IMG/VR virus record: IMGVR_UViG_3300042350_004191
Span: 62,001-126,000 of that record
Strand: one strand, 5' to 3'
DNA length: 64,000 nucleotides
Translations under genes and position numbers: made by a program
Shown here: piece after piece, positions 40,247 to 50,927 of the stretch
How the letters are laid out: the number at the start of each line of letters is the position of its first letter
Position numbering within the stretch: position 1 is the stretch's first letter
Notes under the pieces: generated by a model
Told to the model about the DNA's origin: nothing
What the model saw: the letters and a program-made list of their open reading frames with translations, nothing else
Databases searched by the model: none

Positions 40247-41140
40247 ATGGAAAAAGTAGCCATAATACGTCCCGGTGCAATTGGAGATGTATTAATGTCT
40301 TTTAATTTTTTAAAACAATTAAAAGAAAAATACGAAGTTCATTATTTCTGTCATTCGTCCATCCATTCAGTATTAAAAAGCTTTGTAAAAAATAACAACT
40401 TACTGGATCATTTTTATATATTAGAAAATTATAATTCAGAAAATTTTTTAAAAACCATAAACCTAGTAGCTTATCCCTTGCATGAAGGATATCCTCATAA
40501 AAAAATGCAAAATCATTTATTATATTATTTTGCAAAAGAAATGGATGTAAATTTTACCTTTGATGATTTTGAATTAGATTTACCACCTTTACCTAAAAAA
40601 ATAAAAAACCAAAATTATCCTCGATATATTACGTTTCAAAACAAAACAGGATGGTCTGTCTATAAAGAATGGTGGGGTTGGCAGCAGTTAGTTGATATGA
40701 TTAAAACAAATTATCCAGAAATTGAAATATATCAGATAGGTGGTCCAAATGATCCACAAATCAATAATATAGATGGTTCGTTTTGTGGTGATACTTTTGA
40801 AGATAATTTAGCAGCACAAGCATGGTCCATTGGTCATATTGGTTTAGATTCTGTATTCGAGGTAACAACAAACATCCAATGGAGAAATAAAGGAAGAAAT
40901 AAAGGAATAATACTATTTGGGTCTACCCAACATGACGCAACCGGATATCCTTTTAACACTAATATATGTTTAAATTTACCGTGTCAGCCGTGTTTTAGAG
41001 AAGATCCTAAGATAAGTCAGATGTCATTAGGGTCTTGTATAAATCCACCAAATCAAGAATATGATAATCCAAAACATGCTTGTATGATAGGAATTACGCC
41101 TGAAATGGTTTATCTAAACACCTTGAAATTGTTCAGTTAG
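40247..41140 (+). CDS. GT-B glycosyltransferase, GT9 (heptosyltransferase)-like
   Basis: RPGAIGDVLM, IYQIGG, HIGLDS, IILFGST, CQPCF...C...CM..ITPEMV. Confidence 0.82.
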   Translation: MEKVAIIRPGAIGDVLMSFNFLKQLKEKYEVHYFCHSSIHSVLKSFVKNNNLLDHFYILENYNSENFLKTINLVAYPLHEGYPHKKMQNHLLYYFAKEMDVNFTFDDFELDLPPLPKKIKNQNYPRYITFQNKTGWSVYKEWWGWQQLVDMIKTNYPEIEIYQIGGPNDPQINNIDGSFCGDTFEDNLAAQAWSIGHIGLDSVFEVTTNIQWRNKGRNKGIILFGSTQHDATGYPFNTNICLNLPCQPCFREDPKISQMSLGSCINPPNQEYDNPKHACMIGITPEMVYLNTLKLFS

Positions 41141-41151
41141 TATATTAGTAT
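41123..41151 (+). promoter_or_regulatory. sigma70-like promoter
   Basis: TTGAAA-17 nt-TAGTAT, 5 nt before the ATG at 41157. Confidence 0.45.
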
Positions 41152-41156
41152 ATAGT

Positions 41157-41786
41157 ATGAATATTAATAACTATCATGTTGATGACTTTGGGGTTATTCA
41201 TCAAAAAAAAATTTACCCAATAACATATGATAAAAAATATGTAAAGGAACGATACGACACTTATGGTGAAAAAGTTCGTCAAATGTCTTTTTTGCGTCTG
41301 GGTTATTTGTTAGGTGCTATAAATAAAACTCCTAAATCAATACTTGATGTTGGTTATGGAAATGGTGATTTTTTAAAAACTTGTGCATCTATCATCCCCG
41401 AATGCTTTGGAAATGATGTTACAGGTTATCCTTTACCTGAAAATATTAAGTTTATTGAAAATATTTTTGAAAACTATTATGAAGTAATATCTTTTTTTGA
41501 TGTTTTGGAACATTTTGAAAATATCAACATCATTCAACATTTAAAATGTGACTATATCATTATATCCGTTCCTTGGTGTTACGATTATGAAAATAAAGAA
41601 TGGTTTTTAAATTGGAAACATTTAAGACCAAATGAACATCTTCATCATTTTAACGAAAAATCTCTTATTAAGTTTTTTGAACATAATTCATTTCAATGTG
41701 TTTGTTATAGCAATGTTGAAGATGCTATTAGGAAAGATCCTAACAATAAAAAAAATATTTTAACTGCTGTCTTTAAAAAGATATAG
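41157..41786 (+). CDS. Class I SAM-dependent methyltransferase
   Basis: SILDVGYGNGDFL, FFDVLEHF, IISVP, EHLHHF..KSL. Confidence 0.88.
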   Translation: MNINNYHVDDFGVIHQKKIYPITYDKKYVKERYDTYGEKVRQMSFLRLGYLLGAINKTPKSILDVGYGNGDFLKTCASIIPECFGNDVTGYPLPENIKFIENIFENYYEVISFFDVLEHFENINIIQHLKCDYIIISVPWCYDYENKEWFLNWKHLRPNEHLHHFNEKSLIKFFEHNSFQCVCYSNVEDAIRKDPNNKKNILTAVFKKI

Positions 41787-41789
41787 TTT

Positions 41790-47510: not shown

Positions 47511-48213
47511 ACGATACAAATGTTGTATATGTTGAAGATGGTATTGTGCTTACAGGTTCATCTATTCTATAAACTTTTATGCCATTAAAATATAAATCAT
47601 TAACAGTTGCTGGTGTTGGATCTGTTCCAGAAATATAAAATTTAAAACCTCTAATATTACTATAACCGTTACGTGTTATATCATTTTCAGTATAAGTTGT
47701 TGAATTTAAAGTTACTGAATAACTATAAGAATTTAAATTAGTTTTTTTCAAAACTATTCTTGCTACCATTGTTGGTGAATAATCTTGTCCTGTGCTTATT
47801 CCATTTATAATATAATTTCCTGCTCCTCCACCACCAACATTAAAATTAAAAACTTCTTGGGACCATTCTGTATCACTGTAAGCACTAAACCCCTTATTTC
47901 CGTTTCTAAAATTTACAGATATTGCTGCGGATAATGCATAACCTACCGACAAACTTGATGGTAAGTTTCTTTTTAAATCTATAAAACTTCCCGCTGGATT
48001 TCCATATGCCCCAAAAGATACTCCATTTGTATCTATTAAATTACCGAATGATTGCCCTATAAATGCACCAGCCGTACCGTTTGATGTAAAATCCCATGCA
48101 TTGAAACCATAACCAAAATTAGATGCTCCAATAAAAGATCCTCCATAGTTATTGGCTCTATCTTCACCAATAACAGAATTCGATCCTGCTAAAGATCCTA
48201 AAAATGTTCTCAT
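47503..48213 (-). CDS. Beta-sandwich (lectin-like) hypothetical protein
   Basis: Likely start ATG 48213 (MRTFLGSL), TAATG-coupled to the upstream collagen; Gly/aromatic-rich, ends NDLYFNGIKV... Confidence 0.5.
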   Translation of the reverse strand: MRTFLGSLAGSNSVIGEDRANNYGGSFIGASNFGYGFNAWDFTSNGTAGAFIGQSFGNLIDTNGVSFGAYGNPAGSFIDLKRNLPSSLSVGYALSAAISVNFRNGNKGFSAYSDTEWSQEVFNFNVGGGGAGNYIINGISTGQDYSPTMVARIVLKKTNLNSYSYSVTLNSTTYTENDITRNGYSNIRGFKFYISGTDPTPATVNDLYFNGIKVYRIDEPVSTIPSSTYTTFVSYE

Positions 48214-49682
48214 TAAGATATATCCCCGAAAAGACTCCAATCATTAGCAGATAATTTAACTACAGTTGCTACAGAATTTTGAGATCTAATACTGCGCTTA
48301 TTTTCTGCACTTCTAAGTGTAACTCCATTTACAGATGAAAGACTAACTGTTCCAGTGTTTAAACGAAGTAAACTGATTTGTGTTCCATTTACAAACGGAA
48401 CAGATGTATCTGTAGGCATTGTTAATGTTATTGGATTTGTAGAATTAACAATTATAAATTCACTACTATCTGTTAACTGAAAAACTCTACTTGCGGTAAC
48501 AGTATCTAGCATCAATGTTGCTGGAGCCAATGTTAAACCTGAATATGGAACAAATTTCCAACCCACATTAATATTTGTATAAATTAATGAAAAGTTTCCT
48601 GAAACATCACATACTAAATCTTCTGCAACACCATTAATGTTACTTCCGTTTCTTGCTATTGTTAAATTATTTAAACCATATCTTTCAAAAGTAATATTAA
48701 TAAATGCGCCAGTCAATGGATTTAAAGGTAATGTTGCTGTGATGGGTAAAGTATATGTATTAAAAATAAACCCTTCATTAGAACTTAATGTAGTATTATT
48801 TGTTTCTACTGATGTATAATCAAAATTAGAACCTGTGACACCTGTTGCGCCTGTAACACCTGTTGCGCCTGTGACACCTGTGACACCTGTTTCACCTGTT
48901 GGACCAGTCGATCCAGTAATTCCAGTTGCACCTGTACCTCCAGTAGGTCCGGTTGGTCCAGTTATACCTGCTGATGTTATTGCTAAAATTAAAGCAGCAT
49001 CGTTGCTGAATGATGTTGTTGATATTACTAAAGTTACCGGAAATGAAACATAACTATTATCAACTACTGTTGGAGCACCAGAAACTGTCCATTTTTGATA
49101 ATTTGTCGAATTGTTTTTGTCTTGAATGATTAAAACATCGTTTTGTTTAAACAAAGCCAAAAATATATCAATATCAACACCATCGCTTGTCAAGTGACTT
49201 GCATGGATTACTGTTGAATTTGCTTGTGTTAAATTATCCCATCTAATATCTCCAGAGGATGGTGGTGCTGATGTACCTGTGGTATCTGCTAAATAGGGAT
49301 AATATGTTGTAGATTGTCCTGCTGGTCCTGTAGAACCCGTTGGTCCTGTAAAGCCAGTATTACCAGTTGCTCCTGTAAGTCCAGCACCAGTAGCACCCGT
49401 AACACCTGTTAAACCTGTAGCACCTGTAATACCAGTTTGACCAGTTATTCCAGTAGCACCCGTAACACCTGTAGCACCAGTAGCACCCGTAACACCTGTT
49501 AAACCTGTAGCACCTGTCGGTCCTGTAAAGCCAGTGTTACCAGTTGCTCCTGTAAGGCCAGCACCAGTAGCTCCTGTTATACCAGTATTGCCAGTAAAAC
49601 CAGTAATTCCAGTTGATCCTGTTACACCAGTAGCTCCTGTTGGTCCGTTTTGTAATGGATATAATTCAGAAAGTAGTCTCAT
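48213..49682 (-). CDS. Collagen-like (G-X-T) fibre protein
   Basis: Starts MRLLSELYP; two G-X-T runs; globular domains shared with 43858..45921 and 49689..50927; ends WSLFGDIS. Confidence 0.88.
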
Positions 49683-49688
49683 ATTATT

Positions 49689-50927
49689 TTATGCAATTTT
49701 AATTATAGTAACTTCAGGCGGTGCAAGTGTTCCACCAGCAACACCGTCAGCAAGATTATCTCTGCTTGAAGGATATGGATTATCTGACGGTTGGTTATGT
49801 AACACTTTAAACATTAATTTTGTATTTGGAACTGTTATATTAATTACAGTATTTCCTGTTAAAATTTGATCGGTGTCTGCACCACCGCCCTGAAAGTCGA
49901 TAAGTGCTGTAGATGTTTGGAAACCACTTCCGGTATCGGTTTGTAACTGTACCATTAAACCCAAATTGTCTTTCAAATCATATAAGTGAAGATTTAAAAA
50001 TATTTGATAATAACCTGTTTGTTTAATGGTAAAAAACTGGGAAGTTTTACTTCCAGCATTTGACATATTATCGAATGTTCCAATGTCTGTATTAATTGCA
50101 TTCGAATTAAATGGTATTCTATCATCATTAAATAAATTATCTCTAGGAGCTTCATAAGGACCGACCCATGTTGCTTTATAAATTTTAATTGTTGGTGTTG
50201 TTAAGCCAGAATACGGGACAAATCTCCAACCAATTGTTGGATTTGTATAAATCAATGAAAATGTTGCTGGTACATCACATCTTAAACCACTAGCAGCAGA
50301 ATTTATATTATTATTATTTCTATTAATAATCAAAGGTCCACCTATACTGGATAAAATGTTGAAATTTATAAAATCTCCAACATTTGGAGAAAAAGGTAAT
50401 GTTGCAGTTAATTCACCAGCTAAAGTAGTATTATAAATATAACCAGCATTAGCTGATAATGTTACATTTGTTGTGATTTGGGTGTAGTTGAAATTAGAAC
50501 CAGTTTGTCCGGTAACACCTGTAGATCCAGTTACGCCAGTTTGTCCTGTATTTCCAATCCCTGTAGGACCAGTCGCTCCAGTATTACCTGTTTGACCTGT
50601 AACGCCTGTTTGACCTGTAACGCCTGTTTGACCTGTTATGCCAATTCCTGTAGCACCTGTTATGCCTGTTGTACCTGCAAGTCCAGTGTTACCAGTCGCT
50701 CCAGTATTACCTGTTTGACCTGTAACGCCTGTTTGACCTGTTATGCCAATTCCTGTAGCACCTGTTTTCCCTGTAGCACCTGTTATACCAGATATTTGTC
50801 CAATAATATCGATGATATCTTGGATTTGTCCTTTAATTTCAGCAGAACCATCATTCTTATAACCTACAAAGTAATCATTAGTTTCTAATGGTGATGCATC
50901 ATTAAATTGTGTGAAATTTTTTGCCAT
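49689..50927 (-). CDS. Collagen-like (G-X-T) fibre with C1q/BclA-CTD-like head
   Basis: MAKNFTQF...NDYFVGY module, G-X-T run, shared LTATLP..P..GD.I...GW[RK]FVPYSGLT domain, [20 protein letters not shown] head. Confidence 0.85.

Follow-up and report, generated by a model that had tools for sequence, protein, structure and literature searches.

The DNA analyzed here (the window) is a stretch of 64,000 nucleotides, positions 62,001 to 126,000 of the IMG/VR virus record IMGVR_UViG_3300042350_004191, a contig of 210,586 bp. It includes a locus where a set of glycosyltransferase genes faces a series of genes for collagen-like fibers, most of whose Gly-X-Y triplets have threonine (Thr) at Y. We consider it fairly probable that the two sets belong together as a phage-encoded system that O-glycosylates the phage's own collagen-like fibers. 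The glycosylation itself we infer from sequence comparisons; we take it as probable that the phage sugar-coats its own fibers, on the ground that the same pairing of enzyme and collagen recurs in many unrelated phages and bacteria.

The last three genes of a plus-strand baseplate and fiber operon encode a TibC-like transferase of the GT9 fold, an S-adenosylmethionine (SAM)-dependent methyltransferase and a fusion of a GT9-fold domain, a GT2 domain and a helical region. This operon converges on a minus-strand operon with the gene order gp15 – two G-X-T collagens – three conserved proteins – a third G-X-T collagen, and both the enzyme genes and the collagen genes lie at the ends of tightly packed operons.

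The collagen genes and the enzymes that face them

The gene that heads the collagen operon (50934-52220, minus strand) encodes a gp15-like tail sheath stabilizer (phrog_227, E 2e-20; tblastn match to cyanophage gp15). With this gene upstream and gaps of 6 nucleotides (nt) from gp15 through the collagens, an earlier annotation of this DNA (the original prediction) is borne out in placing them downstream of gp15. All three collagens are on the minus strand. First comes a protein of 412 residues (49689-50927; Pfam Collagen, E 5e-11) with an N-terminal adaptor, a G-X-T stalk, a middle domain and a head of the TNF/C1q/BclA type, next one of 489 residues (48213-49682; Pfam Collagen, E 3e-21) with G-X-T blocks and a tail-fiber-like C-terminus (phrog_16053, phrog_18179) and, beyond the three interleaved genes, one of 687 residues (43858-45921; Pfam Collagen, E 2e-34) with five G-X-T blocks, a TNF/C1q-like head and matches to tail-fiber PHROGs. 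Thr occupies Y in 26 of 31, 47 of 52 and 61 of 78 triplets, respectively, or in 134 of the 161 uninterrupted Gly-X-Y triplets of the three together, in agreement with the prediction that the third position would nearly always be Thr. The X position is mostly Ala, Val, Ile, Gln or Ser; proline makes up 2-7% of the X and Y positions and charged residues are scarce. The long open reading frames (ORFs) at 45524-45928, 48835-49053, 49534-49869 and 50478-50888 on the plus strand, with their PVxPV-type repeats, are shadows of the G-X-T coding and we have rejected them as genes.

The C-terminal heads of the 412- and 687-residue proteins are homologous to each other (E 3e-9). A head model built on 30 homologues, with a predicted local distance difference test score (pLDDT) of 86, was matched by Foldseek to TNF-family ligands, to the C-terminal domain of Bacillus thuringiensis F-BclA (9h38, template modeling (TM) score 0.61/0.69) and to ExsFA. 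It also matches a lactococcal phage receptor-binding protein, and this protein and the TNF ligands are about as good as F-BclA. By sequence the Pfam families BclA_C and C1q are not reached (one of the 30 heads matches each, E 0.02-0.07), and tblastn of the head domain against cultured phages gave no match. As modeled, the heads are of the TNF/C1q jelly-roll type at the fold level only, and it is at this level, not at that of Pfam membership, that the C1q/BclA-like heads predicted for two of the collagens hold. BclA and F-BclA of the Bacillus cereus group are built like the phage proteins, with a short N-terminal anchor, a G-X-T stalk and a C-terminal TNF/C1q jelly-roll head, but the phage heads fall outside Pfam BclA_C and C1q, and the phage proteins have additional middle domains of tail-fiber type and would be parts of a virion.

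The third enzyme gene encodes the fusion protein of 623 residues. Its N-terminal domain (residues 1-250; 41790-42539, plus strand) has a GT9 fold, with a match by structure in the Atlas (TM 0.79) to a cluster consisting 100% of PF01075, weak NCBIfam matches to heptosyltransferase III/RfaQ and a BLASTP match (E 1e-4) to the product of the first enzyme gene. Behind it lie a GT2 catalytic domain and a C-terminal helical region resembling tetratricopeptide repeats (TPRs) (42552-43661, plus strand); the Pfam Glycos_transf_2 match (E 3e-9) spans residues 256-352 and leaves about 270 residues after it. This GT2-TPR module (residues 255-623, ~369 residues) stands alone in relatives and has more than 3,000 homologues, and the family alignment contains invariant DTGSTD and DADE motifs, as in a GT-A/GT2 enzyme with a DxD motif. 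Pfam TPR matches occur in some of the 16 full-length alignable homologues (TPR_2 in four, TPR_14 in two, TPR_P4H in two), so that of the predicted GT9-GT2-TPR fusion the GT9-fold and GT2 domains are clear, while the TPR part scores only in some homologues. The TPR_P4H match, to the peptide-binding domain of collagen prolyl-4-hydroxylase, is weak in both proteins (best E 3.5e-4) and is a lead only.

Which kind of GT2 enzyme this is can be read from the solved structures. The fusion protein alone, searched by sequence against the PDB, finds GmaR (E 3e-9), SunS (2e-6) and 7msk (5e-6), and with the family profile these matches improve to 3e-16, 2e-9 and 6.5e-8, the next GT2 structure following at 4e-4. 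The best NCBIfam match is likewise the SunS family, far below its cut-off (37.9 vs 350 bits). GmaR is the Listeria flagellin O-N-acetylglucosamine (O-GlcNAc) transferase and SunS a peptide S-glycosyltransferase, both consisting of a GT2 domain and helical repeats. Among the solved structures, therefore, those nearest in sequence to the GT2 domain are glycosyltransferases of proteins and peptides. The phage module shares with GmaR and SunS/ThuS the GT2 domain and, presumptively, a region of helical repeats and polypeptide acceptors; the identity is low, and those enzymes act on flagellin or on small bacteriocin peptides rather than on collagen repeats.

The first enzyme (297 residues; 40247-41140, plus strand) appears to be a soluble GT-B glycosyltransferase of the GT9 (heptosyltransferase) fold, similar to TibC and the BAHT enzymes. 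It has no Pfam match and neither the protein nor its family profile found anything meaningful by sequence in the PDB; it was placed only by a fold search. The model (21 homologues, pLDDT 86) has the GT-B fold of the GT9 family, and its best PDB match in Foldseek is TibC (4rap, E 6e-8, TMq 0.70), with WaaF and WaaC next; the Swiss-Prot entries TibC, Aah and BAHTCr match it at E 1e-7 to 2e-6. A GT9-like transferase had been predicted for this gene and the assignment stands. TibC is the enzyme that heptosylates the autotransporter protein TibA, and its iron finger (Cys339/342/358/370), described as unique to its family, binds the protein substrate (PMC4358343). The 297-residue family has four invariant cysteines (246, 249, 264 and 279, with the spacing CxxC-14-C-14-C) which, by the approximate Foldseek register (TibC 98-387 on query 2-296) and in a part of the model with low pLDDT (53-63), fall on TibC ~342-375. 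The likeness to TibC and Aah consists of the GT9 GT-B fold and perhaps of this Cys4 set, which would lie near the place of the iron finger. The differences are the absence of an autotransporter substrate and of the N-terminal beta-barrel (TibC residues 1-97), the phage protein opening directly with the GT-B N-lobe.

Between these two genes lies that of the SAM-dependent methyltransferase (209 residues; 41157-41786, plus strand; Pfam Methyltransf_23, E 2.6e-16; phrog_6564), and further away is an additional GT2-like glycosyltransferase (226 residues; 56185-56865, minus strand; Pfam Glyco_tranf_2_5, E 4.6e-8, 33.5 bits vs a cut-off of 27) with a weak rhamnosyltransferase match; these Pfam scores confirm what had been predicted for both genes. 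No membrane segment was found in any of the enzymes and all are consequently predicted to be soluble.

Association of the glycosyltransferase with collagen genes in viruses and bacteria

To look at this gene pair more globally, we have employed 80 diverse viral loci that carry a GT2-TPR homologue (33-48% identity, fetched by family alignment), counting as collagen any ORF with at least 8 uninterrupted G-X-Y triplets. Such an ORF is present in 34 of them, and in 24 it starts at most 1 kb downstream of the glycosyltransferase gene on the same strand. The density of viral collagens is 3.08 per 10 kb within 1 kb downstream vs 0.08-0.09 at 3-10 kb on either side, an enrichment of about 35-fold (24 seen vs ~0.7 predicted from the distal density). 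The co-occurrence of G-X-T collagens with GT2-TPR genes across phage genomes, put forward in the original prediction as a check, is thus found. Since such loci are not phylogenetically independent, we have also clustered the glycosyltransferases at 60% identity, and 26 of the 71 clusters have a collagen within 1.5 kb. The close relatives L003-L005 also have a G-X-T collagen next to the glycosyltransferase. In the reverse direction, a GT2-TPR-like gene was present within the stored stretch in 10 of 60 viral loci with a confirmed G-X-T collagen, these loci having been picked by a (GAT)4 DNA pattern. A good example of the arrangement is locus L085, where the GT2-TPR gene is followed by a gene for 129 residues, a (GAT)n collagen of 581 residues, a G-P-Q/K collagen of 773 residues and then tail-fiber-like proteins. 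In L049-L058, L064 and L078-L085 the GT2-TPR gene has a charged collagen as its immediate downstream neighbor, and a second collagen, of the G-A-T type, often comes next.

The pairing extends to bacteria. A scan of bacterial species genomes yielded 80 homologue loci that together represent at least seven phyla (Alpha-, Beta- and Gammaproteobacteria, Chlamydiae, Myxococcota, Bacteroidota, Acidobacteriota and Actinomycetota among the groups), and 36 of these loci have a collagen ORF within 6 kb, with a peak within 1 kb of the glycosyltransferase; the gene lies within 1 kb of a collagen in 22 of these 80 bacterial loci and in 26 of the 80 viral ones. Nearly all the bacterial collagens adjacent to it are of the G-A-T or G-P-T type, with up to 406 triplets. 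Huge G-A-T collagens of 229 to at least 406 triplets, extending past the fetched stretch, stand beside the GT2-TPR homologue in L088, L091, L099 and L117 (Alphaproteobacteria and other proteobacteria). Neither of the two bacterial loci that we have inspected is a prophage: the pair in Comamonas is flanked by a two-component system and a metallo-beta-lactamase-fold gene, and in Bradyrhizobium the glycosyltransferase domain is inside a multi-transferase of 1,895 residues beside a collagen of more than 229 triplets. This Bradyrhizobium protein also contains TPR, GH130-like, Anp1, GDSL and GT25 domains.

The same layout exists in a cultured phage, Tunturi_5 of Tunturiibacter, where gp35, a GT2-TPR protein (34.5% identical), and an operon that begins with gp29 are convergent, as in the window. 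Gp29 is annotated as a tail fiber protein and has several G-A-T/G-P-T runs; gp35 has been listed only as a moron or auxiliary metabolic gene (AMG) (PMC11924767). In this region (L286, PP885688, 33318-39144) a nucleotidyltransferase gene, gp36, lies immediately upstream of gp35, and four similar-sized, paralogue-like genes of about 285 residues each, gp30-gp33, separate gp35 from gp29.

With respect to the other enzymes, about half of the best 120 among the more than 3,000 homologues have methyltransferase domains fused to the GT2-TPR module, and in viruses the GT9+GT2 fusions are common and make up large clusters. Because such fusions are common, we tie the methyltransferase and the GT9 domains of the window to the same pathway. 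It had been expected that these partners would be conserved with the module; outside the close relatives, only two of the 80 viral loci have a member of the 297-residue family, and not one of the 80 has the free-standing methyltransferase. The constant core would then be the GT2-TPR protein and the collagen, with lineage-specific extras, since the 297-residue family is confined to the close relatives and these two loci.

Proposed mechanism and its rivals

In the mechanism that we propose, the GT2 domain, with GmaR, SunS and the SgtA-type enzymes among its relatives, would work as a GT-A enzyme that has a DxD motif and depends on metal, and its C-terminal TPR-like region would hold the repetitive G-X-T chains in their nascent or unfolded state. 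A first sugar from the host's nucleotide-sugar pool would be transferred to the Thr at Y. The two GT9-fold domains and the product of the GT2-like gene at 56185-56865 might add further sugars or heptose, and the methyltransferase might methylate one of the sugars. The modified chains would trimerize from their TNF/C1q-like heads and be mounted on the virion as tail or neck fibers. There the Thr-linked sugars would stabilize the triple helix, and the glycan surface of the fibers could serve adhesion, shielding or protease resistance. The usual stabilizers of the triple helix are proline and charge pairs, and a Thr-linked sugar can stabilize collagen free of hydroxyproline, as has been established for the cuticle collagen of Riftia. 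Considering that the phage stalks are poor in both proline and charge, and given the Riftia precedent, stabilization by sugar is a plausible primary role, with surface properties coming second.

This is close to a known system. Clostridioides difficile SgtA has 358 residues, with a GT-A domain and four C-terminal TPRs; its gene directly precedes bclA3, and in vitro the enzyme adds beta-O-GlcNAc to Thr of the GPT collagen repeats of BclA3 (PMC7157674). The phage module resembles SgtA, with which it has been compared by description only, in its build (a soluble GT-A/GT2 protein of ~360 residues with a C-terminus that may be of TPR type) and in having its gene adjoin that of a collagen-like protein whose triplets end in Thr. 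It differs in belonging to a virus, the freshwater host of which is probably Gram-negative or else unknown, rather than to a spore former; in the convergence of its genes, whereas sgtA and bclA3 are co-directional; in being fused to a GT9-fold domain and accompanied by a second GT9-fold enzyme and a methyltransferase; and in facing G-[A/V/I/Q/S]-T rather than GPT triplets. Other viruses also have their own glycosyltransferases acting on their own structural proteins. Mimivirus L230 acts on the viral collagen-like protein L71, hydroxylating lysine and glucosylating the hydroxylysine (PMC9614988), and in mycobacteriophages the targets are, as far as the citing paper describes them, the C-termini of capsid and tube proteins (Freeman et al. 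2023, cited in PMC12619734). In our phage, unlike both, the likely acceptor would be Thr in G-X-T and the enzyme family is GT2-TPR.

The idea of an SgtA/BclA3-like glycosylation of the G-X-T collagens by enzymes of the phage itself therefore has strong comparative support, in the relatives of the GT2 domain and in the conserved linkage, but three parts of the original prediction lack support. The first is timing, the enzymes having been supposed to precede their substrate because of their promoter types. Sites resembling sigma70 promoters occur upstream of the first collagen as well as of the first enzyme and number 57 in the window vs 79 expected from shuffles; the T4-like late promoter motif TATAAATA occurs 13 times vs 18 expected, and there is none upstream of any collagen gene on the minus strand in the window. 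The enzymes are the last genes of a plus-strand structural operon (gaps 3-35 nt). There is thus no support for enzyme before substrate, and co-expression of the enzymes with the late genes is more likely.

The second is the location of the fibers, predicted to form a coat or nap on the virion. All the family-level neighbors of the collagens, in PHROGs as in the Atlas, are tail-fiber proteins, and in other phages the glycosyltransferase-collagen pair heads tail-fiber operons. Such neighbors and operon context suggest tail fibers and give no sign of a coat, and we have set the capsid-coat reading aside as less likely than tail or neck fibers. A head fiber is nevertheless possible in one case, a fourth and short G-X-T collagen (264 residues; 3753-4547, plus strand; 8-13 triplets) in the head-gene region, outside the range of the original prediction, because it adjoins the gene of a 410-residue protein with a ConA-like lectin domain (2508-3740, plus strand; Laminin_G_3, E 3e-13). 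The genes of the prohead protease, the scaffold and the major head protein follow shortly after these two. This collagen probably ends in the same TNF/C1q/BclA-type head, as its alignment to the head family suggests (hhalign probability 70%, E 4e-5, 140 columns).

The third concerns the acceptor. Many of the viral collagens adjacent to the glycosyltransferase are of a G-[E/D/P]-[Q/K/R] type without Thr at Y, and such charged partners mean that Thr at Y cannot be the universal acceptor of the family; as the sole acceptor it fails. This is one of several points that weigh against glycosylation of the collagens. In the flanks of 46 of the 80 viral and 44 of the 80 bacterial homologue loci there is no collagen at all, and only 17% of the G-X-T collagen loci of the reverse test show a glycosyltransferase nearby. 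The fusion protein of the window itself has no significant Pfam TPR match, and no genes for nucleotide-sugar synthesis were found when we looked for them within the window. The lipopolysaccharide (LPS) heptosyltransferases share the GT9 fold and match the 297-residue enzyme nearly as well as TibC does. Moreover, phage fiber genes and glycosyltransferases both gather in hypervariable host-recognition regions, so that linkage is possible without any enzyme-substrate relation (PMC7029224).

This last point leads directly to the alternative that survives best, namely that the target of the enzymes is the host envelope (LPS core, O-antigen or capsule), whose remodeling would either block superinfection or change a receptor, and that the enzyme genes lie next to those of the fibers only as part of a shared hypervariable region. 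A study of pelagimyophages finds many glycosyltransferases in the host-recognition cluster and reads them in this way (PMC7029224), the GT9 fold is typical of LPS heptosyltransferases, the Joint Genome Institute (JGI) names the homologues "ADP-heptose:LPS heptosyltransferase", and the listing of Tunturi_5 gp35 as a moron/AMG (PMC11924767) goes in the same direction. We consider this explanation unlikely, given that the nearest relatives of the GT2 domain are specifically enzymes that glycosylate proteins and peptides and that the 297-residue enzyme seems to keep a Cys4 insertion which in TibC binds the protein substrate. Furthermore, the enrichment of collagens is tightly positional (at most 1 kb, mostly on the same strand) and not regional, and the same glycosyltransferase family stands beside huge G-A-T collagens in bacterial chromosomes without any phage context.

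Alternatively, the enzymes could glycosylate other virion proteins, such as the capsid, the tail tube or the large plus-strand baseplate and fiber proteins, leaving the collagens as unmodified tail fibers. The position of the enzyme genes at the end of the plus-strand structural operon would suit this, as would the many homologue loci without collagens, and mycobacteriophage glycosyltransferases are described, in a paper that cites the work, as modifying the C-termini of capsid and tail tube proteins (Freeman et al. 2023, cited in PMC12619734). However, it is with a collagen gene, rather than one for capsid or tube, that this glycosyltransferase family is recurrently paired in both phages and bacteria, and the SgtA/BclA3 precedent favors a collagen substrate, so we regard this possibility as slightly weaker still. 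Finally, that the enzymes modify the phage DNA (base glycosylation of the T4 type), or have some other unrelated role, and converge on the collagen operon by coincidence seems very improbable: T-even phages do glucosylate their DNA, diverse viral DNA-hypermodifying glycosyltransferases are mentioned in the literature (cited in PMC12619734) and the window phage is distantly T4-like, but similarity to the T4 alpha- or beta-glucosyltransferase appeared in no search, the GT2 plus TPR build and the TibC-like GT9 fold point to protein acceptors, and the conserved collagen linkage would be left unexplained.

Glycosylation of the phage's own collagen-like fibers thus remains the explanation that we prefer. 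More tentatively, and with somewhat less than even confidence, we suggest that the GT2-TPR/collagen pair could be a widespread, unrecognized system for Thr O-glycosylation of collagens in tailed phages, some giant-virus bins and bacteria of many phyla. In such a system the sugar on Thr would replace hydroxyproline or charge pairs as the stabilizer of triple helices that are poor in proline, phages would build glycan-clad tail or neck fibers with additional transferases and methyltransferases that vary by lineage, and the glycosyltransferases of host-recognition regions, at present routinely annotated as LPS-modifying or auxiliary metabolic, would often be virion-maturation enzymes.

Genomic setting and significance

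The phage is, as judged from its genes, a deep-branching, low-GC (~30% in the window) freshwater myovirus that is distantly T4-like. The DNA of the window was also found in several lake-water metagenomes from separate studies, and a near-identity DNA search found no cultured phage that shares DNA with the region. The window encodes a gp23-like major head protein (7825-9261) with only 34% identity to cyanophage gp23, a prohead protease and a gp6-like baseplate wedge (13127-14935), the gene of the latter being followed by those of very large structural proteins without assignment. Since two independent contigs (L001 and L002) are identical and syntenic relatives exist, we judge the assembly to be intact.

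The three other conserved genes of the collagen operon, all on the minus strand, are interleaved with the collagens, and the cassette recurs in the related contigs L003 and L004. They encode a Gly/Ser-rich protein of 245 residues (47503-48240; 77% identical in both relatives) without a family match, a candidate serine protease of 410 residues (46287-47519) and a conserved protein of 122 residues (45946-46314; 65% identical copies at the same place in both). The protease candidate is of a trypsin/Nal1-like type, with GDSG and NAHV motifs, a match to phrog_20754 ("protease", E 1e-7) and Atlas neighbors that include Trypsin_2/Nal1_C clusters at 0.89-0.91. It is 92-96% identical in L003 and L004, vs ~80% for the glycosyltransferase and ~40% for the collagen heads, and this high conservation may point to a role in fiber maturation. 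The last gene of the operon is an ORF of 69 residues (43647-43856), an uncertain gene seen only in the identical contigs L001 and L002. Its end overlaps that of the fusion gene on the opposite strand (stop at 43661) by 15 nt; the enzymes had been predicted to meet the collagens in such an overlap, which is real, but its partner is this ORF and no collagen. Pfam and NCBIfam gave no match for the 245-, 122-, 69- or 410-residue protein.

A few other genes of the window deserve mention. Directly upstream of the enzyme genes is that of a DUF5856/Dps-like protein (39741-40211, plus strand; phrog_858), and at 54873-55262 (minus strand) there is a Cpn10/GroES-like co-chaperonin (E 5.5e-6). Shortly before the prohead protease gene, the structural genes are interrupted by one for a protein with a TnsA-like endonuclease domain (5455-5925, plus strand; E 6.5e-20), possibly a mobile or homing endonuclease.

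Self-encoded glycosylation of virion proteins in phages has been documented for a few actinobacteriophages. The principle is already known from SgtA/BclA3, BclA, Mimivirus L230 and the virion glycans of mycobacteriophages; what is new here is the phage setting, the set of enzymes and the breadth of the gene pair, and our literature search found no report that links phage collagen-like fibers to a GT2-TPR enzyme. When aquatic and soil phages carry glycosyltransferases in their host-recognition regions, these have usually been read as host-modifying or auxiliary metabolic (PMC7029224, PMC11924767). If our interpretation is correct, a large class of these phage "AMG" glycosyltransferases would be reassigned to virion maturation and the stability of collagen stalks poor in proline and charge would be explained. 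The principle of SgtA and BclA3, that of Firmicute spores, would also hold for phages and for Gram-negative bacteria with very long G-A-T collagens. The enzyme and its substrate would then also make a simple tool for producing glycosylated recombinant collagens, and for the phages themselves the glycan-clad fibers would affect adsorption, environmental stability and resistance to immunity or proteases.

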